This document shows, in pieces, positions 740 through 43,297 of a stretch of 64,000 bases of DNA. Position numbers and translations under genes: made by a program. The notes beneath the pieces are model-generated. The model was not told the origin of the DNA. It saw nothing but the letters and a program-made list of their open reading frames with translations, and searched no databases. The stretch covers positions 615,993 through 679,992 of the forward strand of contig CDRNVI010000063.1 in NCBI GenBank assembly GCA_977017575.1. Reading direction: 5' to 3'. This DNA comes from Paramoeba atlantica. Lineage: Eukaryota; Protista; Discosea. How positions within the stretch are numbered: position 1 is the first letter of the stretch; every line of letters starts with the position of its first letter.

Positions 740-754
740 AGGTTCTTGTTAGGT

Positions 755-15962: not shown

Positions 15963-16679
15963 TAATAGTTCACGTTTCGAAATTTAGCCGAGGGGCGGCT
16001 ATATATTTGCCTGCTGGCCCTTCGGGGCACATAATTTTCTCAAATTATGATGTAGTATTCTCTAATTGCATGGAGGGGGGTGTTTACTCGTTTGTTATAT
16101 TCTTGTTAGGTTGTTATTTTGTTACGTTTAAAGTTTTGTGTATGAGATCCCAACGTTTACGGGCTCCGTCGGAGCCACGCCAGGAGCGCGATAGATCACC
16201 GAAGCGGAATAGGGCGCCGACACCCATTCAGACCTCCTCCGTCCAAGACCATTCTAAGCGTCAGTCCCTTTCGTGCCCTCCCGTGCGCCCCCCTCTCCCC
16301 CCTCTCCCCACGCAGCCGGCTCCGCAGGTATCCGCGCGACCTCCTCCGATTCCCCCTACTCCTGTCCCAGCGCGCCGAAAGGTACGCCCTTCAGGAAGAG
16401 CACTCAGCCCCGCCCGCGAACCGCCTAGCCCTCTCCCTTCCAACCTTCCCAGTTTGCCTGCGAGCTCCCTCCCTAGCCCGTACCCTTTTCCGCTGGAGGC
16501 TCCCGAGCCCCATATGCGACGAAGAGGAACCCTTAACCCCGACCAGGTTGCGGCTTCTCGCTCGCCGCGCCGTTACGAGGCCCTTGACATTGACCACGTC
16601 GAGTTGCCGCAGCGTTCACGCTGTGATGCGCGTGGGATCATGACACAATCCAGCAAAGAAGAGTTCATCACGAAAGTGA
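15963..16679 (+). other. Pro/Arg-rich ORF fragment with leader, possibly the 5' part of another retroelement
   Basis: MRSQRLRAPSEPRQERDRSPKR...PPLPPLPTQP; composition resembles the YR N-terminus at 21586; cut off by the SL fragment at 16680. Confidence 0.4.
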
Positions 16680-16695
16680 TTTCTGTACCTTGTTG
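16680..16695 (+). other. Retroposed partial spliced-leader exon (3' 16 nt)
   Basis: TTTCTGTACCTTGTTG, 29 nt upstream of ATG 16725. Confidence 0.8.
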
Positions 16696-21585: not shown

Positions 21586-22770
21586 ATGCCCCCCACCCCA
21601 ATTACTGCTCGTGCCCGTCGTCCCAGGCGACGACGGGTGGATATTCTTACCCCCGTTTCCTCCCCGTCTCTCCGCCAGCGCGAAAGACGGCCACGCGTGC
21701 GTGGCACTACTCCTCCTCCCCGCCCTCTCTCCCCGTTACGTCTAAGGCGCAGAAGCGTCTCCCTCCCAATCCGTCCTCTACCCCGGCTTCCCGTTCCCGT
21801 TTACACCGCCGCCAAGACCGCCGCCGCCAAAACCGCTGCCGTCGTAACCGCCGACGCCGCGCAGCCTCCAGGAGGACGCCGCCAGGAGCTGCTGAGGGCG
21901 ATTCTTCGAATGCCCCCCGAGGACCCGCGCGCCACTCAATTGGGCGAGGCGCTCAGACCCATGTGGGCAACGGCCACGTGGGCCACAAGGGAGCGACTGT
22001 GGTTCCGCCTGCGCGAGTATTGCCAGGCGAAGGGAATCACCGCGAATCCTGCAAACGCGGTGCTCTTCCTGGAGACTCTGCCTCTCGCTACCTCGACGCG
22101 CATGGGGTACGCAGGGGCATTGAGGACTCTGTTCGAGCTCATGGGAATCGAAGGTACCCCATTGAGTCTCTACGTAAAGGCCCTGCAAGCTCAGGGGGGG
22201 CTAGAACCCACGCGGCAGATGCTACCAATCACGCCACTTCTTCTAAAGAAGCTGAGACGTCATCTCGACGTAAAGGAGAGCATATGTTGCCTCCTGTGTT
22301 GGAAAGCCGCTGCGAGATGGACCGAGACCGCCGACCTGAGGCGGGAGCAGTTCGTGAGTGTGGCCAGTCACGAGGTAATCATTTATTGGGGCAGGGGGAC
22401 CAAGACAACCCGTCTGAATCCTTACCGGCCGTACCTCTACGCGATAGTGACTGGACCGGGGACACCCGAACTGGCTCAGTTTGTGGGAAGTTTGAGACCA
22501 GGCCAGCGCCTGTGTTACACGACGGTCCGGGAGATGGACCACAGGATGAATCAACTTCTCGGTCCGGGGTATGGAACACATTCCATAAAAAGAGGTGCAA
22601 TTACTTACCTATTCCACGAGATCTCCCTCGGGAATCTCAGGATGGAGGACGTCCAGAACCTCACGAAACACCTCAACGTCGAATCACTGTTGCGCTACAA
22701 CGCAAGCAGTATTACAACGGCAAGGGCTCTAGGGACGCAGAGAGTCTCAGCACGTCTCCCAGTGCTGTAA
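21586..22770 (+). CDS. Tyrosine recombinase
   Basis: Catalytic pattern WKAAARW...THSIKRGA...TKH...LLRY; Pro/Arg-rich N-terminus. Confidence 0.85.
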   Translation: MPPTPITARARRPRRRRVDILTPVSSPSLRQRERRPRVRGTTPPPRPLSPLRLRRRSVSLPIRPLPRLPVPVYTAAKTAAAKTAAVVTADAAQPPGGRRQELLRAILRMPPEDPRATQLGEALRPMWATATWATRERLWFRLREYCQAKGITANPANAVLFLETLPLATSTRMGYAGALRTLFELMGIEGTPLSLYVKALQAQGGLEPTRQMLPITPLLLKKLRRHLDVKESICCLLCWKAAARWTETADLRREQFVSVASHEVIIYWGRGTKTTRLNPYRPYLYAIVTGPGTPELAQFVGSLRPGQRLCYTTVREMDHRMNQLLGPGYGTHSIKRGAITYLFHEISLGNLRMEDVQNLTKHLNVESLLRYNASSITTARALGTQRVSARLPVL

Positions 22771-24476
22771 CCTCGGAGCACGTGGCAAAGTGCTTCGAGG
22801 AAGTGCCTTACCTTCGCAGGCACTCCGTTGTTTGTGCACGCCGCTCTTCACGGCTAGCCAAGGCACACGACGCTCACCTACCTTTGCACGTTAAGAAGTC
22901 GATACCTGTTATCCATTTGGATCAGGTTAAGGAGTGGATGAGTCTGTCAGCTGCCACTCGTTTTCGCAAGGTAGTGGATGAATTATTATGGGTACCTAAA
23001 GCCCCGTACCCCGAACCTAGTGTGAAAGGTTCATTGCCTGAGGCGGACGTCCGATTGTTGGAGGACGCAGGCATAATCTCCAAGGTCCCGGCGCAGGAGT
23101 TGAGAAAGCGCCCATCGATGCAGTTCATGATTCCCTTCACGGTTGTGGAGACCGATGATGAGGGCAATCAGCGCAGAAGATTTATTTCATGGACAAGGGA
23201 CGATAACGATAGATTAAAATCATATGAACCAAAGGTCCCATTATATCATCCCTCCAAGTATCTTCATAAGGCGCACGAGCCGATGGCTGTGAAGCGGGAC
23301 TTCACGTGTGGATTTTACCAGATTGGTATCCCAAAGAGGGCGCGGCCCAAATTCCGCCTTAGAACGAACAGTGGAGACGTGTTTGAGATGAACGTCCTCC
23401 CGATGGGCCATAGGTGTGCACCGGAGGTTATGCACACGGTTACCGCCGCGATTGCTGGCGAGGCGTCTATTTGTTCTCAGCGCTACTCGTTTCACCGAGG
23501 CGCTATCGACGTTTATGTTGACGGAGTTCGGTTTGCAGGAACCCACTCCGAGGCCACCACGTACGCTCAGTTCATTGACGAGCGTTGCGACAAGGCGAAC
23601 GGTCTTTTTAAAGATCGGGGTCAGCCCCCTGTAGCACAGTACGTGTTCAATGGGGTGGCGTTCGACCATAACGCGCATACGGTCTGCCTGGGACCGCGAG
23701 TGATCAGGAAACTGCGAGCCGACTCTTTCTTCAACATTTCCTTTGTTGACCTAGAGGCGGTGGTGGGGCGCCTCATTTATGGCTCCGCAGTTCTCCGACT
23801 CAATATGCCGCGATTTTATTTCGCTTTGAAGGTGGCGCAACGGCGTATCAACTTGTTGAACCGTTGCCCGAAGTTATGTGACCGTCCGGTCGCACTCCCT
23901 GTCGTCACTCGCTCCATGCTAGCAGAATGGAGAAACGAGTTGCTGGAGAATGTTCCACGGTCTCCACCTCCCCATCCCGATGTTGTTCCACACAAGCATC
24001 GTCTCTACACCGATGCCTCGGTGAAAGGATGGGGAGCGATTATGTATTTAGACAGCGGAGAGGTTTTGATTACGGGAGAGGCGTGGCCTGAGTCATCCTC
24101 GTATGAGGTGAATCGTGCGGAAGCTGCAGCAGTCCGCTTAGCCCTCGAGAAGTTTTCCGCGCATTGCCCCCGTGGAACCTGCTTGGATGTTTTTGTTGAC
24201 AACACCTCCTGTCAGGCTGCACTGAACAGGAGGATCTCCAAGTCAGAGGGGGTTTCAATGGAATTGCGCGAAGTCCTGCGACTGACAGAGGACAAAGGTA
24301 TTTGTGTCAAGGCAGCGTACATATCCACGGATGAGAACCCGGCGGATGCTGTCAGTCGCGGGAAGGAGATTGAGAGAGAGAAGGTTGAGAAATATAAAGG
24401 CAACATCGACAAATACAGCGATAATCAGCATCATCATATTGGTAAGCTAGACAGTCATATTGAAGGAAAACCCTAG
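21963..24476 (+). CDS. Reverse transcriptase-RNase H (homologous part starts near 22770; the upstream open frame overlaps YR)
   Basis: PLHVK, FTVVE, RRRFISW, DFTCGFYQI, LPMG, YVDG, YTDAS, DNT, NPADAVSR. Confidence 0.88.
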   Translation: MGNGHVGHKGATVVPPARVLPGEGNHRESCKRGALPGDSASRYLDAHGVRRGIEDSVRAHGNRRYPIESLRKGPASSGGARTHAADATNHATSSKEAETSSRRKGEHMLPPVLESRCEMDRDRRPEAGAVRECGQSRGNHLLGQGDQDNPSESLPAVPLRDSDWTGDTRTGSVCGKFETRPAPVLHDGPGDGPQDESTSRSGVWNTFHKKRCNYLPIPRDLPRESQDGGRPEPHETPQRRITVALQRKQYYNGKGSRDAESLSTSPSAVTSEHVAKCFEEVPYLRRHSVVCARRSSRLAKAHDAHLPLHVKKSIPVIHLDQVKEWMSLSAATRFRKVVDELLWVPKAPYPEPSVKGSLPEADVRLLEDAGIISKVPAQELRKRPSMQFMIPFTVVETDDEGNQRRRFISWTRDDNDRLKSYEPKVPLYHPSKYLHKAHEPMAVKRDFTCGFYQIGIPKRARPKFRLRTNSGDVFEMNVLPMGHRCAPEVMHTVTAAIAGEASICSQRYSFHRGAIDVYVDGVRFAGTHSEATTYAQFIDERCDKANGLFKDRGQPPVAQYVFNGVAFDHNAHTVCLGPRVIRKLRADSFFNISFVDLEAVVGRLIYGSAVLRLNMPRFYFALKVAQRRINLLNRCPKLCDRPVALPVVTRSMLAEWRNELLENVPRSPPPHPDVVPHKHRLYTDASVKGWGAIMYLDSGEVLITGEAWPESSSYEVNRAEAAAVRLALEKFSAHCPRGTCLDVFVDNTSCQAALNRRISKSEGVSMELREVLRLTEDKGICVKAAYISTDENPADAVSRGKEIEREKVEKYKGNIDKYSDNQHHHIGKLDSHIEGKP

Positions 24477-24589
24477 GGGACAGGATCACCAAATACAAAA
24501 AAAAAAAAAAAAAAAAGTCACACATTACTCGTCACACATGACGACCGGCTGGATTCATTCCGAACTGGTCGTTTGCGCCCATGAACATC

Positions 24590-25121: not shown

Positions 25122-26777
25122 CTTCCACCTGATCCCTCATCTGAATTATTGGAGCGCGCTGACAAGATTGCCTGCGACATTAAGAACTCTACAGAAGGCG
25201 AAACGCCAGACACAGGACACCAGAATGCTACCACCGAAGAAGAACTGTTCTCCAGTGTCCGCCCGACGGAAAGCCTCGAGTTCCAATTCGAAGGAGCCAA
25301 TTCCTCTTCACTCAGCCAATTAAAGTCCTCTAGCAAGGCTGTGAAGGAGAAGTACGAGCGCCATAACCGCAGGGTAGGCTGTGCCGAATATGACTATGCT
25401 GATAACAGGCTAGTTTTTCCTGATCTCACGCCTCCTGATCTTCGCTTCTCAGTAAAGGGTAGCAGTAAAGGCCGTAAAAAGAAGAAACGCCCGAAGGGCA
25501 TCAATCTTTCTCAGCTGGATGCAGTGTCCGGGGCCGACAGCGAGGAACGCGACAATATAGAGTCCAGCGCGAATTCACCCGGGCCACGCACTCATGCCAC
25601 CGGAGTCATGGACAGCCCGTCTATCAAATTGTCCCAAAAGGAACAGAACACTAACACCCCCACGGGTAAGCGTAAACGTCACGTGCAGGTGTCGAAACCA
25701 GGGCCACGCGATTCCTCAGATACCGAAAGGCTCAATCAACCCCCCAATACCACTCCAGAAAAGCCACCTACAGTCAATGGAAACACGCGGAAATGTCCTT
25801 CTCAGGGATGTGCATGGCAAACTGTGCCTCACGGGGGCCAATGGCAATCCTTTTATAACCACGTATCCCACAGACACGGGGACGAGGTGCCTGATACCTG
25901 GTGGAACGAGGAGGGACGTTTCCGATGCAGGGATTGCAACAGGCACTACAACCTAAGCAAACAGGTCACCCATGCCGAAAACTGCGCTTTCCGCTGCTCT
26001 TCTCCCCCACCTATCTCCGAACCTACACAGACAGGGGGCGACCCGAGGGACAACCCTGCATTTTTTGCCGCACAAGCCGTCGCCGAACCCCTTCCCTCCC
26101 TGGCGTCAATCTGTTCGACACCTCTCAACACATGCAAAGACATTCCCAACAGCTGTCGCCAGGGGTGGGCGAAAGTCTTCTGTGAGTGTCTCTCTTCCGC
26201 TGTACGAGACAATACAGTTGAGGCCTGGACTCTTCTCGCCATGCTACCGAAATGCGTACTACCGGCACCTCATCGTGGGGGGAGCAGGGCAAAACTATCG
26301 TACGCCTCGCACGTTCGGAAGTGTCTCGCCCGGTGGTCACGGAAAGAATTTCTCCCCCTTTGGAACGAAACAATTGCGAGCCTACAACACAAAAAACGCG
26401 TCGCACAAGCACAGAGTCCGGAGGACGAGATAACCAAATCTGCTATGCGAGCTGAAAGACTCGTTCGCGACTCGGAACTATCTCGAGCTATGGCTGCCCT
26501 AACCTCTGAACCAGTAGCCCCGTATGACGATGATACTTACACTAAACTCCAAGCTAAGCATCCATCCCGACTCGCTACGTCGGTGAAACCCCTCAGTTCT
26601 TCGACGGAAATGGGACCAAAACCACTTCGAGCCACAGAGGAAGACGTAACGCAGGCTCTTGCAACTTTTCACCGGGGGTCATCGGGTGGCGCTTTTGGGC
26701 TACGCCCTGAACACGTACAAGTGGCACTAGAGTACCACCATGACGGCCGTACGGATCCATTGGGTACACTGACCCAT
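25122..26777 (+). mobile_element. E-family CRE element I, 5'-truncated within LsmAD and broken inside RT by array B
   Basis: CPSQGC...HVSHRH, CRDC...H...C, WTLLAMLPKCVL, GAFGLRPEH; collinear with 39201..43265 until DPLGTLTH. Confidence 0.88.
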
Positions 26778-29700
26778 TTAAGACCACTTTTTGTATTAAG
26801 ACCACTTTTTGTATTAAGACCACTTTTTGTATTAAGACCACTTTTTGTATTAAGACCACTTTTTGTATTAAGACCACTTTTTGTATTAAGACCACTTTTT
26901 GTATTAAGACCACTTTTTGTATTAAGACCACTTTTTGTATTAAGACCACTTTTTGTATTAAGACCACTTTTTGTATTAAGACCACTTTTTGTATTAAGAC
27001 CACTTTTTGTATTAAGACCACTTTTTGTATTAAGACCACTTTTTGTATTAAGACCACTTTTTGTATTAAGACCACTTTTTGTATTAAGACCACTTTTTGT
27101 ATTAAGACCACTTTTTGTATTAAGACCACTTTTTGTATTAAGACCACTTTTTGTATTAAGACCACTTTTTGTATTAAGACCACTTTTTGTATTAAGACCA
27201 CTTTTTGTATTAAGACCACTTTTTGTATTAAGACCACTTTTTGTATTAAGACCACTTTTTGTATTAAGACCACTTTTTGTATTAAGACCACTTTTTGTAT
27301 TAAGACCACTTTTGTATTAAGACCACTTTTTGTATTAAGACCACTTTTTGTATTAAGACCACTTTTTGTATTAAGACCACTTTTTGTATTAAGACCACTT
27401 TTTGTATTAAGACCACTTTTTGTATTAAGACCACTTTTTGTATTAAGACCACTTTTTGTATTAAGACCACTTTTTGTATTAAGACCACTTTTTGTATTAA
27501 GACCACTTTTTGTATTAAGACCACTTTTTGTATTAAGACCACTTTTTGTATTAAGACCACTTTTTGTATTAAGACCACTTTTTGTATTAAGACCACTTTT
27601 TGTATTAAGACCACTTTTTGTATTAAGACCACTTTTTGTATTAAGACCACTTTTTGTATTAAGACCACTTTTTGTATTAAGACCACTTTTTGTATTAAGA
27701 CCACTTTTTGTATTAAGACCACTTTTTGTATTAAGACCACTTTTTGTATTAAGACCACTTTTTGTATTAAGACCACTTTTTGTATTAAGACCACTTTTTG
27801 TATTAAGACCACTTTTTGTATTAAGACCACTTTTTGTATTAAGACCACTTTTTGTATTAAGACCACTTTTTGTATTAAGACCACTTTTTGTATTAAGACC
27901 ACTTTTTGTATTAAGACCACTTTTTGTATTAAGACCACTTTTTGTATTAAGACCACTTTTTGTATTAAGACCACTTTTTGTATTAAGACCACTTTTTGTA
28001 TTAAGACCACTTTTTGTATTAAGACCACTTTTTGTATTAAGACCACTTTTTGTATTAAGACCACTTTTTGTATTAAGACCACTTTTTGTATTAAGACCAC
28101 TTTTTGTATTAAGACCACTTTTTGTATTAAGACCACTTTTTGTATTAAGACCACTTTTTGTATTAAGACCACTTTTTGTATTAAGACCACTTTTTGTATT
28201 AAGACCACTTTTTGTATTAAGACCACTTTTTGTATTAAGACCACTTTTTGTATTAAGACCACTTTTTGTATTAAGACCACTTTTTGTATTAAGACCACTT
28301 TTTGTATTAAGACCACTTTTTGTATTAAGACCACTTTTTGTATTAAGACCACTTTTTGTATTAAGACCACTTTTTGTATTAAGACCACTTTTTGTATTAA
28401 GACCACTTTTTGTATTAAGACCACTTTTTGTATTAAGACCACTTTTTGTATTAAGACCACTTTTTGTATTAAGACCACTTTTTGTATTAAGACCACTTTT
28501 TGTATTAAGACCACTTTTTGTATTAAGACCACTTTTTGTATTAAGACCACTTTTTGTATTAAGACCACTTTTTGTATTAAGACCACTTTTTGTATTAAGA
28601 CCACTTTTTGTATTAAGACCACTTTTTGTATTAAGACCACTTTTTGTATTAAGACCACTTTTTGTATTAAGACCACTTTTTGTATTAAGACCACTTTTTG
28701 TATTAAGACCACTTTTTGTATTAAGACCACTTTTTGTATTAAGACCACTTTTTGTATTAAGACCACTTTTTGTATTAAGACCACTTTTTGTATTAAGACC
28801 ACTTTTTGTATTAAGACCACTTTTTGTATTAAGACCACTTTTTGTATTAAGACCACTTTTTGTATTAAGACCACTTTTTGTATTAAGACCACTTTTTGTA
28901 TTAAGACCACTTTTTGTATTAAGACCACTTTTTGTATTAAGACCACTTTTTGTATTAAGACCACTTTTTGTATTAAGACCACTTTTTGTATTAGACCACT
29001 TTTTGTATTAAGACCACTTTTTGTATTAAGACCACTTTTTGTATTAAGACCACTTTTTGTATTAAGACCACTTTTTGTATTAAGACCACTTTTTGTATTA
29101 AGACCACTTTTTGTATTAAGACCACTTTTTGTATTAAGACCACTTTTTGTATTAAGACCACTTTTTGTATTAAGACCACTTTTTGTATTAAGACCACTTT
29201 TTGTATTAAGACCACTTTTTGTATTAAGACCACTTTTTGTATTAAGACCACTTTTTGTATTAAGACCACTTTTTGTATTAAGACCACTTTTTGTATTAAG
29301 ACCACTTTTTGTATTAAGACCACTTTTTGTATTAAGACCACTTTTTGTATTAAGACCACTTTTTGTATTAAGACCACTTTTTGTATTAAGACCACTTTTT
29401 GTATTAAGACCACTTTTTGTATTAAGACCACTTTTTGTATTAAGACCACTTTTTGTATTAAGACCACTTTTTGTATTAAGACCACTTTTTGTATTAAGAC
29501 CACTTTTTGTATTAAGACCACTTTTTGTATTAAGACCACTTTTTGTATTAAGACCACTTTTTGTATTAAGACCACTTTTTGTATTAAGACCACTTTTTGT
29601 ATTAAGACCACTTTTTGTATTAAGACCACTTTTTGTATTAAGACCACTTTTTGTATTAAGACCACTTTTTGTATTAAGACCACTTTTTGTATTAAGACCA

Positions 29701-31009
29701 CTTTTTGTATTAAGACCACTTTTTGTATTAAGACCACTTTTTGTATTAAGACCACTTTTTGTATTAAGACCACTTTTTGTATTAAGACCACTTTTTGTAT
29801 TAAGACCACTTTTTGTATTAAGACCACTTTTTGTATTAAGACCACTTTTTGTATTAAGACCACTTTTTGTATTAAGACCACTTTTTGTATTAAGACCACT
29901 TTTTGTATTAAGACCACTTTTTGTATTAAGACCACTTTTTGTATTAAGACCACTTTTTGTATTAAGACCACTTTTTGTATTAAGACCACTTTTTGTATTA
30001 AGACCACTTTTTGTATTAAGACCACTTTTTGTATTAAGACCACTTTTTGTATTAAGACCACTTTTTGTATTAAGACCACTTTTTGTATTAAGACCACTTT
30101 TTGTATTAAGACCACTTTTTGTATTAAGACCACTTTTTGTATTAAGACCACTTTTTGTATTAAGACCACTTTTTGTATTAAGACCACTTTTTGTATTAAG
30201 ACCACTTTTTGTATTAAGACCACTTTTTGTATTAAGACCACTTTTTGTATTAAGACCACTTTTTGTATTAAGACCACTTTTTGTATTAAGACCACTTTTT
30301 GTATTAAGACCACTTTTTGTATTAAGACCACTTTTTGTATTAAGACCACTTTTTGTATTAAGACCACTTTTTGTATTAAGACCACTTTTTGTATTAAGAC
30401 CACTTTTTGTATTAAGACCACTTTTTGTATTAAGACCACTTTTTGTATTAAGACCACTTTTTGTATTAAGACCACTTTTTGTATTAAGACCACTTTTTGT
30501 ATTAAGACCACTTTTTGTATTAAGACCACTTTTTGTATTAAGACCACTTTTTGTATTAAGACCACTTTTTGTATTAAGACCACTTTTTGTATTAAGACCA
30601 CTTTTTGTATTAAGACCACTTTTTGTATTAAGACCACTTTTTGTATTAAGACCACTTTTTGTATTAAGACCACTTTTTGTATTAAGACCACTTTTTGTAT
30701 TAAGACCACTTTTTGTATTAAGACCACTTTTTGTATTAAGACCACTTTTTGTATTAAGACCACTTTTTGTATTAAGACCACTTTTTGTATTAAGACCACT
30801 TTTTGTATTAAGACCACTTTTTGTATTAAGACCACTTTTTGTATTAAGACCACTTTTTGTATTAAGACCACTTTTTGTATTAAGACCACTTTTTGTATTA
30901 AGACCACTTTTTGTATTAAGACCACTTTTTGTATTAAGACCACTTTTTGTATTAAGACCACTTTTTGTATTAAGACCACTTTTTGTATTAAGACCACTTT
31001 TTGTATTAA
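26778..31009 (+). repeat. Tandem array B, 18-bp unit ATTAAGACCACTTTTTGT, about 235 copies
   Basis: Directly visible; only two 1-nt deletions seen (about 27310 and 28993). Confidence 0.98.
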
Positions 31010-34000
31010 TACGTTGGTACAAAATGGCGGAGGCCTCCGGACCGTTCGAAAGTGTGTTGGAAGTCTGTGGCAAACTTCGGACGGCCAGGTGTGGTCGGGG
31101 CAACCTTTTTCTGCCTCCACAGCAGAGGGGGGTTGGGACAAAACTCCGGCAGCGGGCCCTTTTACAGATGTCAAAGGTTTTGGCTGTGGGAAAACGCGTG
31201 GCTGTTGTTTGGTGTATGGCTTATAACGAACGTATTACACTCTGGGAAGGGGTGGTTCACTCATCGCTTGATGGGTCTGGTTGGCTCGTCAAGTACGACT
31301 TGATGAATGGGCGCCTTCTCCCGTTTCCTCCGAGAGATGATCGTATCCATGTGCTAGGCGGCAGAGTTGGACTGCTTCCAAAATCTTTGCGCAAACGTAA
31401 TCGGAAACGCAAATCCTGCTTTCGGCGTGGCTACCGAGAGCAGAGACCCAAGATCAAAGCTATGAGAGAGGGGTTTGCAGTAAGCACCATGAATGTAGAT
31501 ACTTTAAAGTGTAAAACCACAGACGAGTTTGCTCTACGTAAATGTTTCCGTTTGCATCAAGCTGTAGAGTTCATGCGAAGTTACGGCGTAACAATAATGG
31601 CCTTGCAGGAAACGCGACTATCGTTCAAGAGCGAGGAACCGATCATTCATCGTAGGCTCTATCTGGCTGGCATTAGTGTTCATATATATATTATGAGTGC
31701 AATAAAGGGCTATAACGGAATGGCAATGCTGAGTCTGCAACCCATGGGTGTTGAAAAGATCAATGATCGCATTATGAAAGGAACAATGCATATTGGAAAG
31801 ATGAAGGCGTGTATATTTAATGTTTACTCCCCGACGGCTGGTGCAAAGAAAGATAAGCAAGAATCGTTTGATGAGGAGCTATTTGATGCTTGGCATGATT
31901 CACAATGTTCGCTAAAGATAATATGCGGAGACATGAACGCACCTTTGCAAGATCCAAATGGCAGAAAATGTTGTTCGGAAAGAGCGCAAGAATTTCGCAA
32001 ATTTTTGGTAACCCTTGGATCTAAATCGGCTCATCAATGTTGCAGCGCAGAAAGAAAGTGGACTTATAGGTTTCCACCTACGCCGAAACACCCTGATGGT
32101 CTAACAAAACAGCTTGATCATATCATAATAAATTCCCGTTTCAGCTCAGCATTTCGGTATCAGAAGGTGCTTTTGGCTCCCATACCTACGAGACACTGTG
32201 CAGTAATAGCAGGATTAAATATAAAATGGAGAGTGGCATGCAAACCTGGTAAGTTACAACCGTTTTGGGGATCCTTGAGAAACGAAACCATATGTGATAC
32301 ATTCGTGAAAAATGTGGAGGAGTCAATTCAGGGGGGAAATAAACGGTCACGAGAAGGGTCAATTGGTCCCGCTTTATGGGATAAGCTATCGTCCGCAGTC
32401 AACTCCGCCGCAGAGAAATTACCCAGGAAAATTGCCAATATTGGAAAAGCTCCTGACTCGGAAACTGACTCGCATTCCCTTGATATGAAAACTATTGTGC
32501 AAATTGCTCGAAATCGAAGGACTTTCGATACCTTTGCTCGAGAACATGGAAAAATGATTGAAGAATGCGTGAAAGAAGAATGTGAAGTGATCCAAGAAAA
32601 GCTATATAAATGTCCAAAAAGCGCGTATCAAGCAATTCGCTATATTGTAGGGGAAAATCGAAAAGTATTCTCCATGTTTGGTGAAAATGTTCGAGACAGT
32701 ATGTGCAGAGTGAGAGGACATTTTCAGGCGATAGGTAACCAATTAAATCAAATTTCCGAACCGATAAACTTTCCTAACTGTAATAAAAGCTTAATTGGTA
32801 TTGAGGATACGGAATTTACCCTAAAGGAGCTCAGAATTTCTCTGCAAAAAGTCAAATCTGGAAAAGCCTCAGGCTCCGACAACATTCCTATTGAGGCTCT
32901 CTCTACATTGGCTCAGAGCGAAGAAGCACTTGGCATGCTCTTGAACATAATAAATGAAGTAATGTGTACTGGTGCCGCGGCGGATAAATGGAAGATGATT
33001 CTGCAAGTGCCACTTCCAAAGAAAGGGAATCTCAATGATCTTACAAATTGGAGACCGATATGCATTGTAAACCATGTGGTAAAGGTAATGAACCGGATGG
33101 TACTAGAGCGTATACAACCAGCCGTTGAGAATATGCTTCGCTCAAATCAGTTTGGATTTCGCCCGCACCGATCCACTGCCGGCGCAAAGGCAACTTTCGT
33201 GGAAATAGCTACTAAAGCTTCGAGGGGAGAAGGTGTTGCGGTAGCGTTTGTTGACTTTAAGCAGGCATTTCCTTCCGTTACTTTCTCTGCAATACGAGAT
33301 GCGCTGAGAGCATTCCACATACCGGAAAATATTACTAAAGTTATTATGAGCATGTATGAAGGCCTGAAATCTTATGTGAGGACGCCTCATGGTGACACCG
33401 AATCGTTTTCTATTGAAAATGGTACTCTACAAGGGGATGTGCTCGCGCCATATCTCTTTATTATGGTCCTCGACAGGATTATGGCAGAGGCCATTGACGC
33501 GAAGGGGTTGGGTGTCATTGCTTATTCCACCGGGACGAAGAGTCGCGGCGAAAAGCACCTCCGAATTTCTGATGTGGCATATGCAGATGACGTAGTTCTC
33601 TTCGCTTCTTCTAGGTCTGAACTCTCCGAAATGCTAGAAAACCTGTGCAAGTATGCAAAGAGGGCAAACCTTCAGGTAAATCTGGGCAAAAACAAGACCG
33701 CATGGATGGTTCTAGGAAAAATTGATGACATGACAGCTCCCCTTCTAGTCCCAAGTGTTGGAGAAATCCCCCGAGTATACAAATATAAATATCTTGGAAG
33801 TACACAAGAGAATGAAAATCGTCATGTAGCCCCACAAGAACGCATTCGTCTAGGATGGGCCACAATGCATAAACTTCATGCGATATGGAACTCACCCATT
33901 CAAGTCGCAAGTCGGTTAAAAATATTTCGAACACTTGTTATGCCTGTTATTAATTACAACTGCGGCACGTGGAATATTTCATCGAATCAAATGAGCGAAT

Positions 34001-35758
34001 TGGACGTACAAGTCAGCAAAATGCGAAGATGGGTATGCGGAGTAGGGAAAAGATGGAAAACGGGAAAGTGCATTCGTCTTGAATCTCTTTATCAAGATGA
34101 CTTGAAACTCAGCACAACATCAAAAATACAACGTGCTCAACTTATTGGCCATCTTGTTCGACATGAATCGCCGTTTAGCCTAGCCATTCTGTGGCGCGTG
34201 CAAGACAAATCATCATACCCTTCGATCTCTGAATTATGCGCAAAAGATTTAAATCTTTCAATAGAAGAAGTCATACATTCGTCTCGGGACCGCGCCTTAT
34301 GGAGGTCAAGCGTTGATCGACTACGAAATCGGATCGAACCACGCCCTGATTATGTACCCATCGAAGCAAAATCATGGGAAAAACGAGCAATGGTTGCACG
34401 AAAAGAATATAAGTCACTACAATTCGTCGAAGAAGGCGCATTGCCATTCCCAAATATTTCTCCAGCCGTACACATGTATACTGATGGCTCCCTTAAAACA
34501 ACGAAATCGAAAGTTACTCCTGGATGCGGAATCGTGTGGTGGGGGGATGGTATTGAGAAGTCCTTAATGGGAGTACGACCTCCAACGGATATTGAGCTCA
34601 CCATAACTGCGGTAGAGCTCTATGCCGTATATGAGGCACTGAATCTTGCGGCACATTATGGGCAGGACATTGTATTACACACAGACTCAAAATACGTATG
34701 GGAATTCTTCCACATTATAAGGCATCGATTTTGCATAGTTGGGTTTCAATTATTCCAGAGCGCGCAACTACTCAAGAAGATACAACTTTTGTGTTCTAAG
34801 ATCGAGCAAAATAGCAATGTATATTGCATCAAAACCAGAGGGCATGAAGGAAACCCGCACAACGCAACCTCAGACTGGCTCGCTAAACGAGCTTGCGCAC
34901 ATCAAGACGAAAACCCTTCCTTTACTTACCGCGGTTTTGATATCGTGACCAATCAAAAGAGGAAAGGTAACGAAATTCAAAACAATATGAAAAAGAACAA
35001 AAACAAAAATACGAAATTACCAGAGTTTGCGCACACACCTATCGAAATGTCTCCTACGCACTCTATAAGCACGAAAAATAAAGGTAACCTGATAAATGAA
35101 AAGGGGAAACGATCAAGATCCAAGAACAAGCGTGAAAATGCGAATACGCACAGCAACCAAAAAGCACGAAAAGCTGATGGAAAGAGGAGTACGAATACAT
35201 ATTCACCAGGATTCGCAGAGGTAACTTTAGCAAGAAAGCATCCACAAAGAAAGCGAGCTAATTGTGAAGAGGAGTGCAAGAGAACTCGAAAGGGGGGGAG
35301 CTCTTCTTCTAAAACGTGATTTTGGAAGCCCAAAAGTTGAATGGAGTATCATTTTATTTATTTTGTTTATTTATTTTTACTTTTATTTTATATTCAATAA
35401 TGCGATCAATTGGTCTGTTTCAGCAGTTGAAGAGGGGGTTGTGAGACGAAGGGTTGTTCATATATTTATATATATATTTATAAATTGTATTTATACGTTA
35501 TTATTTGTTTTAGTTGTGTTTCGCCAGCAGATAAGGTGGCCAAGTGTATGGGAGGTGAGTTGGAGGACATTTTCGCCCTATAGGGCCATTCTCATAAGAA
35601 AGTAATGAGGATGCACGAGTTCTTGGCTGCAGATGGACTCTTTGCGCGTAAATTTTATGTGAGTTTACATGGAGAAGTGTTTATGTTTATGGTGTAAATT
35701 GTAAACCCCCCAGCTGATATATATGTATCAGTGTCTTTGTTGTTTGTTGTTGTTGTTG
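31010..35758 (+). mobile_element. Full-length APE-RT-RNase H non-LTR element, family B, with (TTG)n tail
   Basis: Single ORF 31024..35319; about 440-nt 3'UTR; TTG repeats 35737-35758. Confidence 0.9.
31024..35319 (+). CDS. 1431-aa APE endonuclease-RT-RNase H polyprotein
   Basis: APE STMNV, LQETR, NVYSPT, GDMNA, QLDHI; RT NWRPI, NQFGFR, VDFKQAF, GTLQGDVLAP, YADD; RNase H YTDGS, ELYAV, HTDSKY, RGHEGNPHNATSDWLA. Confidence 0.95.
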   Translation: MAEASGPFESVLEVCGKLRTARCGRGNLFLPPQQRGVGTKLRQRALLQMSKVLAVGKRVAVVWCMAYNERITLWEGVVHSSLDGSGWLVKYDLMNGRLLPFPPRDDRIHVLGGRVGLLPKSLRKRNRKRKSCFRRGYREQRPKIKAMREGFAVSTMNVDTLKCKTTDEFALRKCFRLHQAVEFMRSYGVTIMALQETRLSFKSEEPIIHRRLYLAGISVHIYIMSAIKGYNGMAMLSLQPMGVEKINDRIMKGTMHIGKMKACIFNVYSPTAGAKKDKQESFDEELFDAWHDSQCSLKIICGDMNAPLQDPNGRKCCSERAQEFRKFLVTLGSKSAHQCCSAERKWTYRFPPTPKHPDGLTKQLDHIIINSRFSSAFRYQKVLLAPIPTRHCAVIAGLNIKWRVACKPGKLQPFWGSLRNETICDTFVKNVEESIQGGNKRSREGSIGPALWDKLSSAVNSAAEKLPRKIANIGKAPDSETDSHSLDMKTIVQIARNRRTFDTFAREHGKMIEECVKEECEVIQEKLYKCPKSAYQAIRYIVGENRKVFSMFGENVRDSMCRVRGHFQAIGNQLNQISEPINFPNCNKSLIGIEDTEFTLKELRISLQKVKSGKASGSDNIPIEALSTLAQSEEALGMLLNIINEVMCTGAAADKWKMILQVPLPKKGNLNDLTNWRPICIVNHVVKVMNRMVLERIQPAVENMLRSNQFGFRPHRSTAGAKATFVEIATKASRGEGVAVAFVDFKQAFPSVTFSAIRDALRAFHIPENITKVIMSMYEGLKSYVRTPHGDTESFSIENGTLQGDVLAPYLFIMVLDRIMAEAIDAKGLGVIAYSTGTKSRGEKHLRISDVAYADDVVLFASSRSELSEMLENLCKYAKRANLQVNLGKNKTAWMVLGKIDDMTAPLLVPSVGEIPRVYKYKYLGSTQENENRHVAPQERIRLGWATMHKLHAIWNSPIQVASRLKIFRTLVMPVINYNCGTWNISSNQMSELDVQVSKMRRWVCGVGKRWKTGKCIRLESLYQDDLKLSTTSKIQRAQLIGHLVRHESPFSLAILWRVQDKSSYPSISELCAKDLNLSIEEVIHSSRDRALWRSSVDRLRNRIEPRPDYVPIEAKSWEKRAMVARKEYKSLQFVEEGALPFPNISPAVHMYTDGSLKTTKSKVTPGCGIVWWGDGIEKSLMGVRPPTDIELTITAVELYAVYEALNLAAHYGQDIVLHTDSKYVWEFFHIIRHRFCIVGFQLFQSAQLLKKIQLLCSKIEQNSNVYCIKTRGHEGNPHNATSDWLAKRACAHQDENPSFTYRGFDIVTNQKRKGNEIQNNMKKNKNKNTKLPEFAHTPIEMSPTHSISTKNKGNLINEKGKRSRSKNKRENANTHSNQKARKADGKRSTNTYSPGFAEVTLARKHPQRKRANCEEECKRTRKGGSSSSKT

Positions 35759-38581
35759 GATGCAACGTAAGCCGCGGAGGCGTGGAGAGCTGCGGATCTC
35801 AGACCTAATCCCCCATGACGCTTCAGTCGCTGTGCTTGAGATTGTGCTGACCTGTCCAGAGGACAGATGATTGCCTCTATAGCGGTCATGAGAAAGTCGT
35901 CTAAACGGGAGCAAAGGTGAATCAGGGACTGTGGGGGCGTGCTTCTCATGGCATACACCATTTGACAGAACCCCGCACATTGACGAATTAGGGCAAGCGC
36001 GACCTGGGGGTCCTGAATGTTGGTGATGGCATCGAGGGTATCCTCGGCTGGTTCTAGGGCGTGAGAAAGAAGATAAGCAGAGCAGTGGTCGGCGGATCCT
36101 ACAGGACTCCCTAGTATGTCAAAGTTCCCCTGCGAATTGATCTTCTCGTCGGGTATGTCTGGGAAGTAATCAGCCTGGTGGGCCGAGCTGGGGGAAGTAA
36201 TAATTTCGCATTTCGACGTATTGAGATACAAGTCCCATTGAGGTCCTACTCGGGCGATCGTGTCTAGGGCGTCTCTAACTTCCTGCGCCTGGCCAACGAG
36301 GACGCCATCGTCGAGATACCAGAGTTGGGCGGGAATATCAGTTTGAAGGTTAATGGCTTCTGAGAGCTCCAGGGCCACTAACGAGAAGAGCAATGGTCCT
36401 AGGGGATCGCCCTGTTGTACTCCTTCCTCGGAGGAGATGAATCGGGCCCCGTAGGTAAGAGAGCTGGGGTCGGAATAGCACCAATTGATCCAAGGGAAGA
36501 GTTCCGGGAAATATTCCTGTACTAGTGGAAGGAAGGCAGCCCTGCTTACGTTATTGAAAGCGTTACGTAGGTCCACTTTGCACATGACGAAGTTCGGGTT
36601 TTCCATATTGGACGACATGGCCAGGCGACACATGTGAATGACTCTTTCGGCCCCGGCTGGAGCTGCCACTCCGTACTGTTTGCCTTCAAAGAGCTCGCTC
36701 GCTTTGGGTCGGATTGCGTTGCATACGGCTTTGCTCGCTAATCGCCGAAGGGTTTCACCGGCAGCGATCGGACGAACATCATTTTCACCCTTTGATAGGG
36801 CGCATAAGCGCGCCCCTGCGAAGTGCGCCTGTACTTCAGAGGGTGCCTTCCCAGCTAGGAGGTGATTTGTTAGCTTTGTGAGGGATCGGAGAAAGTCATT
36901 TCCGTGTACGAGCAGTGCTGCCTGTAGGTGCTCTGGGCGTAATCCCATAGTGCCGGCAGAGGAACCCCTGTTGAAGCTCTTCAGCGTCTTTGCAACTTCG
37001 CGTTCGTCAAGTTCCAGTGGAGCGCAGTTCGGGGGCGGGCAGTTTTCGCACGAGTCAATTTGAAGACGACGGGGGTGTTTTTCTAGCAATTTTTCAAATG
37101 TTCGTCATCGTCAGGCGCCATTGGATCTGACGTTAGGGAGGCCAACCCTCTAGAGAGCTCGCCGTGGCGGACGAGGAGTTCTGCTCGAATCGCTGCCTTC
37201 TCGTCTTCGTCAGGGAATTCCGTTGGAGATTTTTGCTTTTTTCGACAGGCTACAATTGCTTCGCTCCATAGGTCCGAGTACTCTTGTTCCGCCCAACGCT
37301 GCATGCATTTATACGCATGTGAGGCATATGCCATGTGGCCTTTGCGGCCCCCTCGATGCGGAGCTGGTAAAACGCATTTGGGAAGCATGGCCAGAAGCGT
37401 CCATGCCTGTAAGGAGTTTTCAGAGACCGCGTTCCGAATGGCGGAGGAGAGGATTTCTTCCCAGATCTGGCGGCAACGATAAGGCACGTCTTTGCACGTA
37501 CTCAGCTGAAGAGAGCAGACAGAAGGAAGAGGTGGGAGCTCAAAGTTGGTGTTCTCTGGTGTTGGTGCGGTGCTCACTTCGTTGGGTGGAGTAAGAAGTT
37601 CGGGAGAAAGGAGCGCGACGGTTTTCGTTCCTTTGCAGCTGTGTGTGTGCGATGATCGTTTGTGGTTGTCGTAGTGGCGTCCGCATGAGGTGCATAGAAA
37701 ACGGCCTTCTCTGTACCACCATTCATTAGGGATGCTGTTACCGTGCCGGCATGCGACATGGTTATAGAAGGCTTGCCAGGATCCGCCATGCGACGGACTG
37801 CGCCATGAACATCCCTGGGCCGGGCACTCTCGGAGCGCGGCAGACTTTCCTTGGGACAATGAGTTGGGCTCAGCGAGGCTAACGCCAGCGTTTTCAATAT
37901 TCTGGGTTTCGTGTCTTCTTCCTGGTTGCTCTTGAGATGGGCCCGGAATAAGTTCATAAGGATGCAAGAGTGAAGGTGTCTCTGGGTCTACCCGGTATCG
38001 GATGAGCTTATTTCTCCGTGGAGTAGGGGTTTTCTTGGAGTGACCTTTAATGTCCTCATTGCTACGTGCTTGGGCGGATAGAGCAGTTTTGAGTGGTGTA
38101 CTTAGATGCTGTGTAGCATTCAAAGCCTCTTTCGTCTTCTTCGCTGGCGTTACTTGCCTGATAACAGCGGAGTGTTGCATCTCTTCATTTTCGACCTCCG
38201 TGTGACCTGTGTCCGGTGTTTCATTAACCCCACCTACGATCGCGTTCGTTCGGCGGATCCAATCTTCAGGAATATTCTGAGGGATGGGGGTCGTGTAAAG
38301 GTCTTCATGGTATGTGCTCGTCCCCGTGATTAAATGTTCGTTTCCTTTAAATTGGTCCCAAGACCCCGGTCGGTGAGTTCTGCCATTAATTTCTAAGCAT
38401 TTGTCGTCCGTCTCCATGGCTTCGGCTTCGTGGTCCGGATTTCCGCTGTTGTCGTCTATGGGAGGAAGTGTGACTGCGGGGGGGATGATACCAGACATAA
38501 AAATTAACCCGTACCTCGGAAAGAGATGAAATAGAAAAAATTCAACAAGGTACAGAAACTGTATCTTTATCGTTAAAGATT
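35759..38581 (-). mobile_element. SL-capped E-like CRE element D; frameshift near 37085; 3' part lost at the junction with the tail of element B
   Basis: ATG 38498; LsmAD-like GSWDQFKGNEHL...TYHEDLYTT; two Zn fingers; RT RPIAAGE, DLRNAF, GVQQGDPLGP, WYLDD; ends at SAAYVAS. Confidence 0.88.
38543..38581 (-). other. Retroposed full-length 39-nt spliced-leader exon
   Basis: AATCTTTAACGATAAAGATACAGTTTCTGTACCTTGTTG on the minus strand, abutting the poly(A) of the upstream element. Confidence 0.88.
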
Positions 38582-39200
38582 TTTTTTTTTTTTTTTTTTT
38601 TTGGGTATATGAATTTAAAACAAGCAATCAAATTGGCAATTCTTTTTATTTCCACAGAAGCATATTTTCTTTTTCTTTTTTTTCTCAGCCCAAAACTAGC
38701 AATTCACCTTTTTTTTTTTTTCTTTTTCTTTTTTCTCAGCCCAAAACTAGCAATTCAATCTCCCCTAAGTATATACGACAAATAAGACACAGTAAAAATT
38801 AAAACAAGCAATCCAGACCCAATCCATTCGCGCGTTCCGGACCGGGTCTTTCGACCTCTCCACGGCCTGACTTGTGAACCCTTCCCTTGCTATACGGGAG
38901 GGCGCAGGCGCGGGCCTGTGTCGACAACGACACGGTCACGAAACAGGATGCTGGCCGACGGGGAGGAGATTCACTACCCGTGTACTACCTCACTTGGGGT
39001 ACCTAGCCCTGACGGACTAGGCGTGAGCATAGACTCTGTCGACCCGACCAGCATCCGTACCGGGAGTTTCCCACGAAAGTCACCTGGCCATACCCCTGGT
39101 CATACACAACGAGAGCCGGGTCGGCGTTTGCCGCGGGAAAACGTTGTATAGCGGCCAGATTTCGCAGGCGAGGAAGTCTTTGGGTGTGGCGAGTGATCCA

Positions 39201-42200
39201 CTACTCGTTCCCATAGCCTAGGAGCGCTGAATCAGGACCCACAGCAGGCCGGCGTAGGACGAGCATGCGGGCTTGGGATCTCATGAGGGTTACATTTAGG
39301 GATGTAAGCAACCGGTGTAGAGCATCCCCTTTCGGTAAAATATCCCCGGAATTGGCATTGCATGCCCTACCTGCAGCAACCACCCTAAGGATTGACATTG
39401 CGCTAGGGCTCCACGAGCCAAACGATTCTACCACCATGGCGGTAAACTTCATTCGCACCGCTTCAGCCTCTTCTCGTTGTTTAGCCTTGTTGGCGGTCGC
39501 GTATTGCTCCGCAAACGACCCCGCCGTCACCCAGTTAGCGTCACGGACTGTGTCCGTATATTTTTGTTGCTGGACATGAGTGACAGCGAAGTCGAGTACG
39601 AGGGCCTGACCGCGACCGAAACTTCGGATGAATACGTCCCCAGGTCTGGTGAGTGCGCCACCCGGACCTATGTTCCCCAAACTCACTTCTCTTTGAGGGG
39701 CAAGCCCGGCCTTTGAACATTCCGCAGAGAATTGGGATACCAAGGCACTGTGCCGAGCAGTGATCCCGTGCCCGCATTTGCATGCCAGTGCGTGTTCACC
39801 CCCTGGGCCTAAGGGCTGTTTGCACTTTTCCATGGGGCAGGGACGGAGGCCCGGGTAGATGGTTTCCCCCAGCCACCAACGGATTAACATGCGAAACTCC
39901 GTGGGGGCGTACGCAAAGCCGTTCTTTTTGGACGGCAACACGAAAGCCCACTCCGACGCCCCTTCTCCCGTTTCCGAGCTCCACCGAGCCCTCGTGCTTG
40001 GATCAGCGTGGGCGAGTGCGTGTTCGAACGCGTGGGATGAAATAGCATGGCTCAGGTCCCTTTGTCGAGGTATGACCAATTTATTGTCTATTTCATGGAT
40101 CGGATTGGTTTGAAAGGGTTGGTGCTCTGAAACGGCCGAGCTTTGTAGAATTTTGCCCGTTTCATTGTCAACGATATTCTTCCCTGCGCGTTTGTTCACG
40201 TCGATCACTGCCTCATCGAAATCTTTTGCGTCCGTTGGATCCCAAAAGTCTTTCTCCGCTGCGAAGGCGACTGAGGCCACATAAGCGGAGGCAGAATGCT
40301 CCTCAGCTGAACGGAGTCCCAAGCCACCAAACCGTTTGCCTCTCTGTGCTTGGCGCCTTGCTGCGTCGCTGAATGGCCCGAAAAAGTGTGAGGTAGCGTC
40401 TTGCACTGCGTCGTCGAGACGTCGGCAGAGATCCTGGAGCTCCGACGTTGGGGTAGTACGGAGTGAGTAGACCATCTGACAGAAGCCCGTGCAATGCCGA
40501 ATAAGTGAAAGGGCTACCTGGGGGTCCTCGAGGTTGGTAATGGCTTCCAGCGAGTCCTCTGCGTGTTCAATGGCGTTGTCAAGGAGAAATTGACGGCGGA
40601 ACTCGGTTGTCCCTACAGGGCTACCTAACATATGGAAATTACCCTCAGTGTTTTTATTCGATCCAGGTAGGTCGGGGAAGACAGAAGAACGATGAGACGA
40701 TGCGGGGTGCGCAGCGAGTTCACATTTCGCAGCATTCAGATGTAAACCCCATCGCGGGCCGTTTAGTTCTAGCACATCAAATGCGTGTCGTACATCGCAT
40801 GATGCGCCCGCCAGTATTCCGTCATCTAGATACCATAGATTCAGGTCTAGTTTCGGTGTTGCCGCGTGGATTTCCGAAGCAAGCTCCCTCATAACCAGTG
40901 AGAAGAGGAGGGGGCCAAGGGGGTCGCCTTGTTGTACCCCTTCAGAAGACTTTACCGTACGCGTACCGAATGTGAGTAAACTTTCTGTAGAATAACACCA
41001 CTCTACATAATGACTGAGTTCGGGAAAGTGCATGCGCGTTAAATCAGTGAACCTGTCACGGGACACCTGGTTGAAGGCATTCCGGAGGTCTATTTTGCAT
41101 AGAAGGAAGTCGTCATCGTCTACGTGGGCCGCGAATGTCTGACGGCAAAGATGGATAACACGTTCCGCCCCGGCCGGTGTAGCGACCCCGTATTGGTGTC
41201 CCTTAAAAAGTTTGCGGGCTCTGGTTTTGGCAGAGAAGCAAGCAACTTTGCTGGCCAAGCGGCGAAGGGTTTCACCAGCGGCGATCGGGCGTACGTCGTG
41301 TTCCCCCTTCTTCAAGGCACACAATCGACCTCCAGCGTAGTGGCTTTTGACTTCTAATGGTGCTTTTCCGGCTAGCATGTGATTGGTGAACTTTGTGAGT
41401 ATTTCCAAAGGACCGGTCTGACCATCGTGATGACCATGTATAGCAACTTGCACGTGTTCCGGCCGCAGACCAAAGGCACCCCCGGAGGAACCCCGATGAA
41501 AAGTCGAGAGTGCCGCCGATACTTCATCCTCCGTCACTTTAAGAGGTTCCACGTCCACTGATGGGCTGGGTGTATCTGATGCGGAGAGTCGGGGGGGATG
41601 CTTTGCCTGAAGCTTTGCGTAAGTCTCATCATTGTCCGGAGCGAGTGGCGCAGATGTCAGTGCGGTCATGGCGCGTGAGAGCTCCCCGTCACGTACGAGT
41701 CTTTCGGCTCGTAGTGCGGATTTTTTCTCTTCTTCTTCGAGACTCTGCGCTTTCTCCACGCTTCTCTTCTTCTTGCCCGTGACGCTCTTGACAGCTTCAG
41801 CCCAGAGCGCCAGGAACTCTTTCTTGGACCAGCGAGAAAGGCATTTCCGTACGTGGGAAGCATACGATGTTTTCGCCCGGCTACCTCCTCGATGGGGGGC
41901 AGGTATAACGCATTTGGGCAGCATAGCGAGGAGAGTCCACGCTTCAATGGTATTCTCTCGGATTACCGAATCTAGACACCCGCAAAGCGCCTTTGCCCAC
42001 TCTGGTCGGCAGCTGTTGGGTATATCTTTGCAAGTGGTAATGGGCAAGGCGCATATGGAAAAGAGACTTGGAAGGGGTGTGTCACTGTTCATTATATAGG
42101 TTTCGTCGGTAGTGTTCTGGTCTGCCTGTGCGTCGGATATTTCGTTTTTCTCTAGCGGCACGTCAGCACTCGAGACAGAAGTGTCGTCACTCGGTGTGGG

Positions 42201-43226: not shown

Positions 43227-43259
43227 GTAATGGTTGAATGTAAGAAAGAAAAAATAATT

Positions 43260-43297
43260 CAACAAGGTACAGAAACTGTATCTTTATCGTTAAAGAT
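43260..43297 (-). other. Retroposed spliced-leader exon (38 nt)
   Basis: ATCTTTAACGATAAAGATACAGTTTCTGTACCTTGTTG, 33 nt upstream of ATG 43226. Confidence 0.88.

Follow-up and report, generated by a model that had tools for sequence, protein, structure and literature searches.

The analysis concerned a 64,000-nucleotide stretch of the Paramoeba atlantica assembly GCA_977017575.1 (contig CDRNVI010000063.1; hereafter the window, whose numbering is used for all coordinates not prefixed by a locus), which carries an intact long interspersed nuclear element (LINE), termed family B, immediately preceded by a 4.2-kb array of an 18-nucleotide repeat. Comparison of this element with related loci outside the window (L001-L012) indicated that the array, termed array B, is probably the element's own 5′ leader, and that the same build is common to a whole clade of LINEs in which an apurinic/apyrimidinic endonuclease (APE), a reverse transcriptase (RT) and an RNase H are combined.

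Analysis with Tandem Repeats Finder (TRF) located array B at 26778-31009 on the forward strand as 235.2 copies of an 18-mer with 99% matches and no indels, and an exact count gave 232 identical units of ATTAAGACCACTTTTTGT plus two units one base shorter, both of which are singleton one-base homopolymer deletions (near 27299 and 28991). The distal end of the array starts TTAAGACC, while the proximal end reads ...GTATTAA, the partial unit ATTAA occupying 31005-31009, and is followed by a unique 14-nt leader, TACGTTGGTACAAA (31010-31023, forward strand), and by the ATG at 31024. TRF and the exact count thus confirmed an original prediction, made from this DNA, of about 235 copies of an 18-mer directly ahead of the open reading frame (ORF) of family B, as did the end of the array at 31009 for the predicted spacing of 14 nt between array and ATG. 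A perfect array of 4.2 kb excludes a chance origin, and the occurrence of arrays of the same kind in an independent assembly (L002, L006, L007 and L010) argues against an assembly artefact; the exact copy number of array B could be off. Four arrays of 17-18-nt units were detected by TRF in the window (A1, A2, B and C), between them taking up 18% of its 64 kb.

The intact family B ORF (31024-35319, forward strand) encodes a protein of 1431 amino acids in which Pfam matches identified an APE (Exo_endo_phos; amino acids 171-373, 31534-32142), an RT (RVT_1; amino acids 665-926, 33016-33801) and an RNase H (RNase_H; amino acids 1148-1291, 34465-34896), an order which, within a single ORF, is that of an APE-type non-long-terminal-repeat retrotransposon with RNase H. 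The 3′ untranslated region (UTR; 35320-35758, forward strand) ends in a (TTG)n tail at 35740-35758, and a related 3′ end with a TTG/TTTG tail is present at L001:273-381. The 5′-truncated copies and simple-repeat 3′ tails by which LINEs are recognised were both found, in the form of a B copy in L001, the (TTG)n tail and a truncated relative at 5186-6817. No record matched the B protein in an exact database look-up, and homologue searches conducted with it returned only a near-identical partial copy (P0001) and one N-terminal relative; a related-locus search with P0016 led to one locus.

Examination of the related loci established that the build seen in the window is a recurrent one, the counts of copies and of target duplications given here being small samples from the loci fetched rather than a genome-wide catalogue. 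At least twelve related families, drawn from a second assembly of the organism and three other metagenome samples (plus one doubtful contig), share a 17-19-nt unit repeated a variable number of times and then broken off immediately ahead of the G of AAG, after which come a short stretch of unique leader and the ATG. Every relative with a fetchable 5′ end has this build, with a leader of 3-25 nt in the families read, even though identity of the proteins concerned to B, or among themselves, is no more than about 24-37%. The families include A (8.6 units in L001, where the build was seen at L001:3310-3480), D (at least 525 units of a 19-mer in L002 and 5.9 units in L010), F (15 units in L006), G (83 + 11 units in L007), I (87 units in L010) and J (2 units in L009), together with short metagenome contigs that start inside an array, namely L004 (JGI 3300014822), L008/L012 (JGI 3300020578), L011 (ENA ERZ19568283) and perhaps L005. 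Copy number ranges overall from 0.7 to more than 525, and the variation in array length across copies, measurement of which had been proposed with the original prediction, proved to be wide within families A (94, 21.6, 8.6 and 6.8), B (235 versus 0.7) and D (at least 525 versus 5.9).

Of particular relevance to the ownership of the array is the second copy of family B (L001, ENA ERZ24900291), which is 99% identical to that in the window and starts with 13 nt of the unit plus the same leader (L001:9975-10000), the DNA upstream of it being unrelated. An ordinary unique 5′ UTR in other B copies had been named at the outset as the finding that would count against a family-specific array; the copy examined has kept 13 nt of its unit. 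In family F (L006), the 14-mer CTATTGTATTTTGA is present both directly before the array and directly after the 3′ end, within approximately 40 nt of collinear similarity, a match for which the chance expectation was estimated by us to be about 0.006. As CTATTGTATTTTGA lies outside both the array and the 3′ end, the family F array is inside the target duplication. Ordinary target duplications are indeed made by the clade, an 11-nt example flanking a C-like copy in L009 that has only 0.7 of a unit. Taken together, the fixed phase of the junction between array and leader, the 13-nt remnant in the second B copy and the duplication in family F imply that the array belongs to the element and not to the site. 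The contention that each family has its own repeat also stood, inasmuch as separate copies of one family were found with one and the same unit, in B (window and L001), D (L002 and L010) and A (four arrays). The contig that makes up L009 (ENA ERZ24900291 ctg3800c) is marked circular, with a period of 12,510 bp (2930-6234 = 15440-18744), and probably represents nested retroelements in a tandem block which the assembler has circularised.

A second full-length element of the window, family C, is encoded on the reverse strand (54785-58864; 1359 amino acids, APE-RT-RNase H). Reading of both starts verified that B and C begin CAAAATGGCGGA(G/T)GC(C/T)TCCGG, and the divergence expected of their proteins and units was equally evident, the former being 37% identical and the latter being reported by TRF as different. 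Across the clade, the start of the ORF is kept at the nucleotide level as GCG-NNN-GCN-TCC-GG (31027-31041 in the window; L002-L007, L009, L010 and L011), the serine codon being TCC in all 11 of the aligned families, whose proteins are only about 30% identical, and the arrangement CGGA....TCCG would permit a small hairpin. This conserved start may be an RNA or DNA signal that overlaps the coding sequence. Further into the protein, a clade-wide N-terminal module with invariant W63, W74, G76, V78 and FPP101-103 (alignment A2) was apparent. In B, its predicted fold is a five-strand barrel (predicted local distance difference test score, pLDDT, about 90) of the Tudor/Spindlin-like kind at approximately amino acids 55-120 (31186-31383, forward strand), for which the best PDB matches were all Spindlin Tudor-like readers of histone methyl-lysine (E about 0.03, 25-32% identity over approximately 65 residues). 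On the basis of this modelled fold, the module may serve as a chromatin reader that steers insertion.

The units themselves proved to have a common form and a very variable content. All are 17-19 nt in period and have, on the sense strand, a run of pyrimidines with AAG a few bases later, L005 being a doubtful exception, and the proximal boundary of the array is always ..TAA, before the G of AAG (in B, between ATTAA and T); otherwise the sequences differ strongly between families. The pyrimidine run of family D is TTTCTTCCT, which indicates that pyrimidines, and not T alone, are what is kept. Variant units within the D array (L002:2-9999) mostly keep the AG, with ATTCAG (54 occurrences), ATTAAAG (39) and ATAAG (24) compared with ATTACG (13), a retention that may reflect either selection on AG or chance. 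Families A, B and F, the N-termini of which are 53-69% identical, have units 3-5 edits apart with an ATTAAGA core in common. Family D, on the other hand, has an N-terminus 54-67% identical to those of A, B and F, yet carries an unrelated-looking 19-mer which is 7-8 edits away, a distance equal to that of shuffled units, and in family I, which is C-like, the unit matches that of B at 17/18 positions. A Mantel test of unit distance against protein distance across nine families was not significant (rho 0.22, p 0.21). The proposal that arrays co-evolve with their element was consequently upheld at the level of the family, where independent copies of B, D and A have the same unit, but only in part, the link at greater depth being a loose one, to judge by the Mantel result and by families D and I. 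The units are thus family-specific while following protein phylogeny only loosely.

The host is a spliced-leader (SL) protist, and several retroelements in the window start ...GATACAGTTTCTGTACCTTGTTG, which is the SL copied from trans-spliced RNA. These elements are referred to as CRE-like, a label taken over from the original prediction, an RVT_1 match and a weak LsmAD match being what was seen in them. Their SL copies lie at 3282-3300, 38543-38561 and 43260-43278 on the reverse strand and at 50842-50860 on the forward strand, with partial copies at 724-742 (reverse) and 16677-16695 (forward), and the elements often stand directly after the poly(A) of a previous element, forming head-to-tail retrocopies of trans-spliced RNA. 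In L003, a relative from another organism, the SL is directly upstream of a T-run and of the motif ACATAAA with T beyond the boundary, a position which suggests that RNAs of the clade are trans-spliced near the spot at which array and leader meet. Judged by its sequence, a unit made up of a pyrimidine run plus AG has the form taken by trans-splice acceptors of SL-using protists, and such a unit would enable a LINE located in a polycistronic transcript to yield a capped, translatable mRNA. A role as promoter monomers, as in mouse L1, would be the main alternative function. The possibility that the distal ends of arrays are themselves splice junctions, the array beginning right after AAG, was considered and rejected as a general rule, since B, A and G do not conform to it, although L010 does and L006 possibly does. 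A comparison of the 5′ ends with Rfam yielded neither a ribozyme nor any other known RNA.

A number of observations weigh against the view that the array is the element's own leader. The target duplication of family F was seen only once, and in AT-rich sequence, and for B itself no duplication was detected, neither flank having a word of 10 nt or more in common with any other part of the window. The flanks of B are, moreover, the 5′ portions of two separate CRE-like elements that point in opposite directions, and this, with the lack of a target duplication, implies either a rearrangement of the B locus or a compound insertion. The arrays also vary in distal phase, and an SL was found at the distal end of none of the seven readable arrays, a result which argues against SL-capped RNA as the template that is copied. 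Among sequencing runs, the element was present in four DNA runs of one study and in no RNA run. Finally, a leader of 4-10 kb would block cap-dependent scanning unless the RNA were trans-spliced near the ATG, from which it follows that the RNA that is translated and the RNA that is copied may differ.

The original prediction that the far end of array B is joined to a broken CRE-like element, and that the array is consequently internal, held on closer inspection, retroelement pieces being present on both sides. Upstream, the fragment at 25122-26777 (forward strand), which tblastn aligned with the full copy at 39204-43265 from roughly amino acid 68 to 620, is 5′-truncated, beginning right after the 25-nt poly(A) of the preceding element, and 3′-truncated at, or immediately ahead of, the beginning of its RT domain, the point at which it gives way to array B. 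The junction reads ...CTGACCCATT (also written ...GACCCATT) directly followed by TAAGACC. Downstream, a CRE-like element on the reverse strand (35759-38590) with an SL at its 5′ end (the 3′ end of the SL at 38543-38561) is cut at approximately amino acid 998, where the tail of B abuts it. A second junction of the upstream kind was recorded in L010, where a 3′-truncated sense fragment of an F-like element (L010:7809-8432, amino acids 1-209) is joined to array I. The junction between the CRE-like fragment and array B reads best as a template switch or a 5′ transduction, events that leave behind sense pieces with a truncated 3′ end, in preference to a fused chromosome end; it could have arisen by switching from the end of the leader onto CRE RNA, or by transduction of upstream sequence from a parent locus. 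A 31-kb compound insertion into one reverse-strand CRE-like element, with halves at 4502-4797 and 35758-38378, was also tried as an account of the locus and was not borne out, since approximately 180 amino acids would be missing and there is no duplication.

With respect to the remaining arrays of the window, array C (58877-64000, reverse strand) comprises at least 290 units of GATCAAGTTTTTTGTAAA and runs off the end of the window. Its blocks are, from distal to proximal, 29 copies of a 17-mer, 29 of an 18-mer, 99 of a 17-mer and 133 of an 18-mer, and at its proximal end ...GTAAA is followed by TTTATTTGCAAA and then by the ATG, the same layout as in B on the other strand; the 3′ tail of family C is (TTGGA)n, ending at about 54576. 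Array A1 (4798-5185, forward strand; 21.6 units of ATTAAGACAACGTTTTTT) is joined at ATTAAGA to a 5′-truncated LINE (5186-6817, forward strand), which starts in the RT domain and is 54% identical to family H of L007, a family with a single 5′ unit resembling that of A. The (ATT)n tail of this LINE passes in register into array A2 (6818-8508, forward strand; 94 units of ATTAAGACAACGTTTTTT, including a duplicated 20-unit variant block), with ATTAAGA at both junctions. The proximal end of A2 is in turn joined to 8509-10373, a 5′-truncated copy of the poly(A) element at 22650-24514 beyond which the array does not resume; the two are 99.5% identical, and what they represent is the 3′ portion of an element that ends in poly(A) and has a weak match to RT_RNaseH. 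Equivalent arrangements were observed elsewhere, a 456-bp element of G-type 3′ UTR sequence lying in phase inside the G array (L007:6230-6685) and the (GAT)n tail in L004 running in register into a different 18-mer array. Arrays are therefore frequent landing sites for members of the clade, with microsatellite tails joining in register. Families B and C are not themselves inserted in arrays, their 3′ flanks being other retroelements.

The short element in the G array is of a non-autonomous type (approximately 456 bp) in which the final 27 nt of the ORF of family G are followed by the 3′ UTR of that family. It has the same 5′ start, GAAATCCAC..., at L007:6230-6685 (reverse) in the G array and at about L007:345-810 (reverse) behind the G element, and the window holds a 76-nt piece of it at 15141-15216 (reverse). 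A further 18-mer, TATAAAGAACACCTTTTT, occurs 3.1 times at L001:1502-1557 (reverse) and is then followed by unrelated sequence, as an array stub with no element. The window also contains a GC-rich 177-bp tandem repeat (52333-53614; 7.2 copies, 95% matches) between retroelement fragments, and an inverted duplicate of 120-739 at 16680-17299 (99.4% over 620 bp), which is a CRE-like 5′ end with partial SL.

As to how such arrays grow, the leader would be present in the RNA that is reverse-transcribed, and its length would change by out-of-register realignment between the direct repeats that bound the unit (ATTAA...ATTAA), either while the 5′ end of the RNA is being reverse-transcribed or through later replication slippage or unequal exchange, or both; flawless array B would then be a very recent product. 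In accordance with their state, intact copies have flawless arrays (B and the blocks of C), whereas broken copies have short arrays or arrays of 94% identity with higher-order blocks, as exemplified by array D, which is attached to a broken ORF and is 94% homogeneous with higher-order blocks on the scale of kilobases. The block pattern of array C is explained by one duplication of 128 units, and the multi-unit blocks in C, A2 and D indicate that at least part of the growth took place on multi-unit templates. One possibility, put forward tentatively, is that arrays are made anew at each retrotransposition by the RT of the element, the 3′ end of the cDNA (the complement of AUUAA) realigning in the manner of telomerase on an internal AUUAA 18 nt downstream, in which case 1.3 units in the RNA would suffice. 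Consistent with this are the form of the arrays, which in all the families and organisms seen consist of n whole units and one partial unit, with a direct repeat of 5 nt as the boundary; the flawlessness of array B, with 232 of 234 units exact; the location of the longest and cleanest arrays on intact copies; the capacity of these RTs to reiterate at the 3′ end, where the tails are family-specific ((TTG)n, (TTGGA)n, (ATT)n, (GAT)n, (TAGG)n and (TTAG)n); and the presence of other sequence beyond the distal ends in B and L010, as would be expected if a template switch follows completion of the array. By way of contrast, the 17- and 18-mer blocks and single 128-unit duplication of C, and the blocks of A2 and D, are impossible from one fixed template unit, and the telomerase-like form of n units plus a partial unit is given by any slippage between direct repeats. 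The suggestion in the original prediction that arrays may be made by their element is one of three routes with which the data are compatible, the others being the copying of a long leader in the RNA and expansion at the level of DNA. That a LINE RT acts like telomerase at the far end of its RNA, copying one 18-nt unit hundreds of times over, with each insertion being born with a fresh kilobase-scale satellite, is regarded as doubtful; if true, such reiteration would stand, as a living intermediate, between retrotransposons and synthesis of the telomerase type, and would generate satellite DNA directly. It is still less likely that all growth postdates insertion and is due to replication slippage and unequal exchange, the array then being a neutral minisatellite seeded by a 5′ UTR repeat with no role for the RT and no function. 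Unequal exchange would account for the duplicated blocks in A2, C, D and G, and the wide variation in copy number within families also suits this explanation; however, the same spot, boundary, 17-19-nt period and pyrimidine run plus AAG are kept across families that are about 30% identical and in several organisms, and the longest perfect arrays, not the shortest, are on the youngest intact copies.

The alternatives that deny the array to the element altogether fare worse. The in-register positions of the truncated LINE at 5186-6817 (A1/A2), the short element at L007:6230-6685 in the G array and the L004 tail could be taken to mean that the array is a pre-existing satellite into which family B inserts as a site-specific LINE, like TRAS and SART, but this is improbable given that B and C have no array on the 3′ side, that the phase of the junction between array and leader is the same in independent copies and families, that the family F array is inside its target duplication and that the units in L004 differ between the 5′ and 3′ sides; the target repeat was found on both sides only of the truncated element at 5186-6817 and of no full-length insertion. 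It was further suggested by the original prediction that a capped chromosome end carrying the element had later been fused or extended, a notion to which the length, perfect homogeneity and orientation of the arrays, and the running of array C off the end of the window, lend some colour. The arrays are nevertheless inside insertions, and in F inside a target duplication; some arrays of this build have only 0.7 to 15 units, too few to cap; and the piece beyond array B is a 3′-truncated sense fragment following another poly(A), hence part of a retrocopy chain and not a fusion point. No link of arrays to chromosome ends was seen in the window or the loci fetched, and a telomere-like cap is very improbable as an origin, so that this part of the prediction was not sustained. 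Least probable is a derivation of the units from SL relics that accumulated as trans-splicing and retrotransposition alternated over many cycles, in the way known from gene recycling in dinoflagellates. SL-capped retrocopies are common in the window, and the unit plus leader of family C aligns with the 3′ half of a kinetoplastid-type SL (p = 0.0055 against the SL of L003), but this match fails correction for 18 tests, eight of the nine unit types are no closer to either SL than shuffled units (p > 0.09), no full SL is present at the distal end of any array read, and 235 identical units would need 235 rounds free of mutation. An SL origin of the units was therefore rejected by alignment against shuffles.

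A literature search gave no description of a LINE clade with a leader unit of 17-19 nt that is present in as many as hundreds of copies and keeps its form from one organism to another. Should the trait hold, the elements would be a direct, dispersing source of satellite-like DNA, the arrays would illustrate how a retrotransposon may cope with polycistronic, trans-spliced expression, and the clade would provide a tractable test of telomerase-like reiterative synthesis by a LINE RT; as landing pads, the arrays build head-to-tail islands of retroelements. Several known systems invite comparison. The trypanosomatid elements ingi and L1Tc, which have the 77-nt Pr77 promoter and a hepatitis delta virus-like ribozyme at the 5′ end, share with the present clade the order APE, RT, RNase H, a host of kinetoplastid type and the need to obtain RNA from polycistronic transcription. 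Here, however, there is no Rfam ribozyme at the 5′ ends and the leader is a tandem array, and the likeness is drawn independently of any placement in an RT tree. With chimeras of U6 and L1 and with 5′ transduction, the junctions in B and L010 have in common a foreign sense piece of RNA upstream of the 5′ end of a LINE and a short microhomology, but the landing point is inside the other RNA and not at its 3′ end, and the B composite has no target duplication, the event itself being reconstructed from the junction. As with telomerase, HeT-A/TART, TRAS/SART and the Penelope-like Athena elements, an RT is tied to long, perfect, oriented arrays of a short unit, a short direct repeat that could be used for realignment lies at the limits of the unit, and elements join arrays in register through their tails. 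Unlike those telomere systems, the array is at the 5′, last-copied end of a coding RNA, has no dedicated template RNA and is internal, inside target duplications. A close parallel is provided by rodent L1, in which LINEs have 5′ UTRs made up of monomer arrays (A, F, Gf and Tf) with a unit of about 200 bp in a handful of copies. In mouse and other rodent L1 elements, as here, tandem repeats directly upstream of the ORF serve as the 5′ UTR and vary in number between copies of a family, the outermost unit is truncated, and family-specific types are exchangeable between ORF lineages, a C-like protein being combined in the present case with a B-like unit. The unit of the present clade differs in being 17-19 nt long, in being repeated hundreds to more than 500 times, in consisting of a pyrimidine run plus AAG and in belonging to a host with SL trans-splicing, while the loose link between unit and protein recalls the mosaic 5′ ends of rodent L1.

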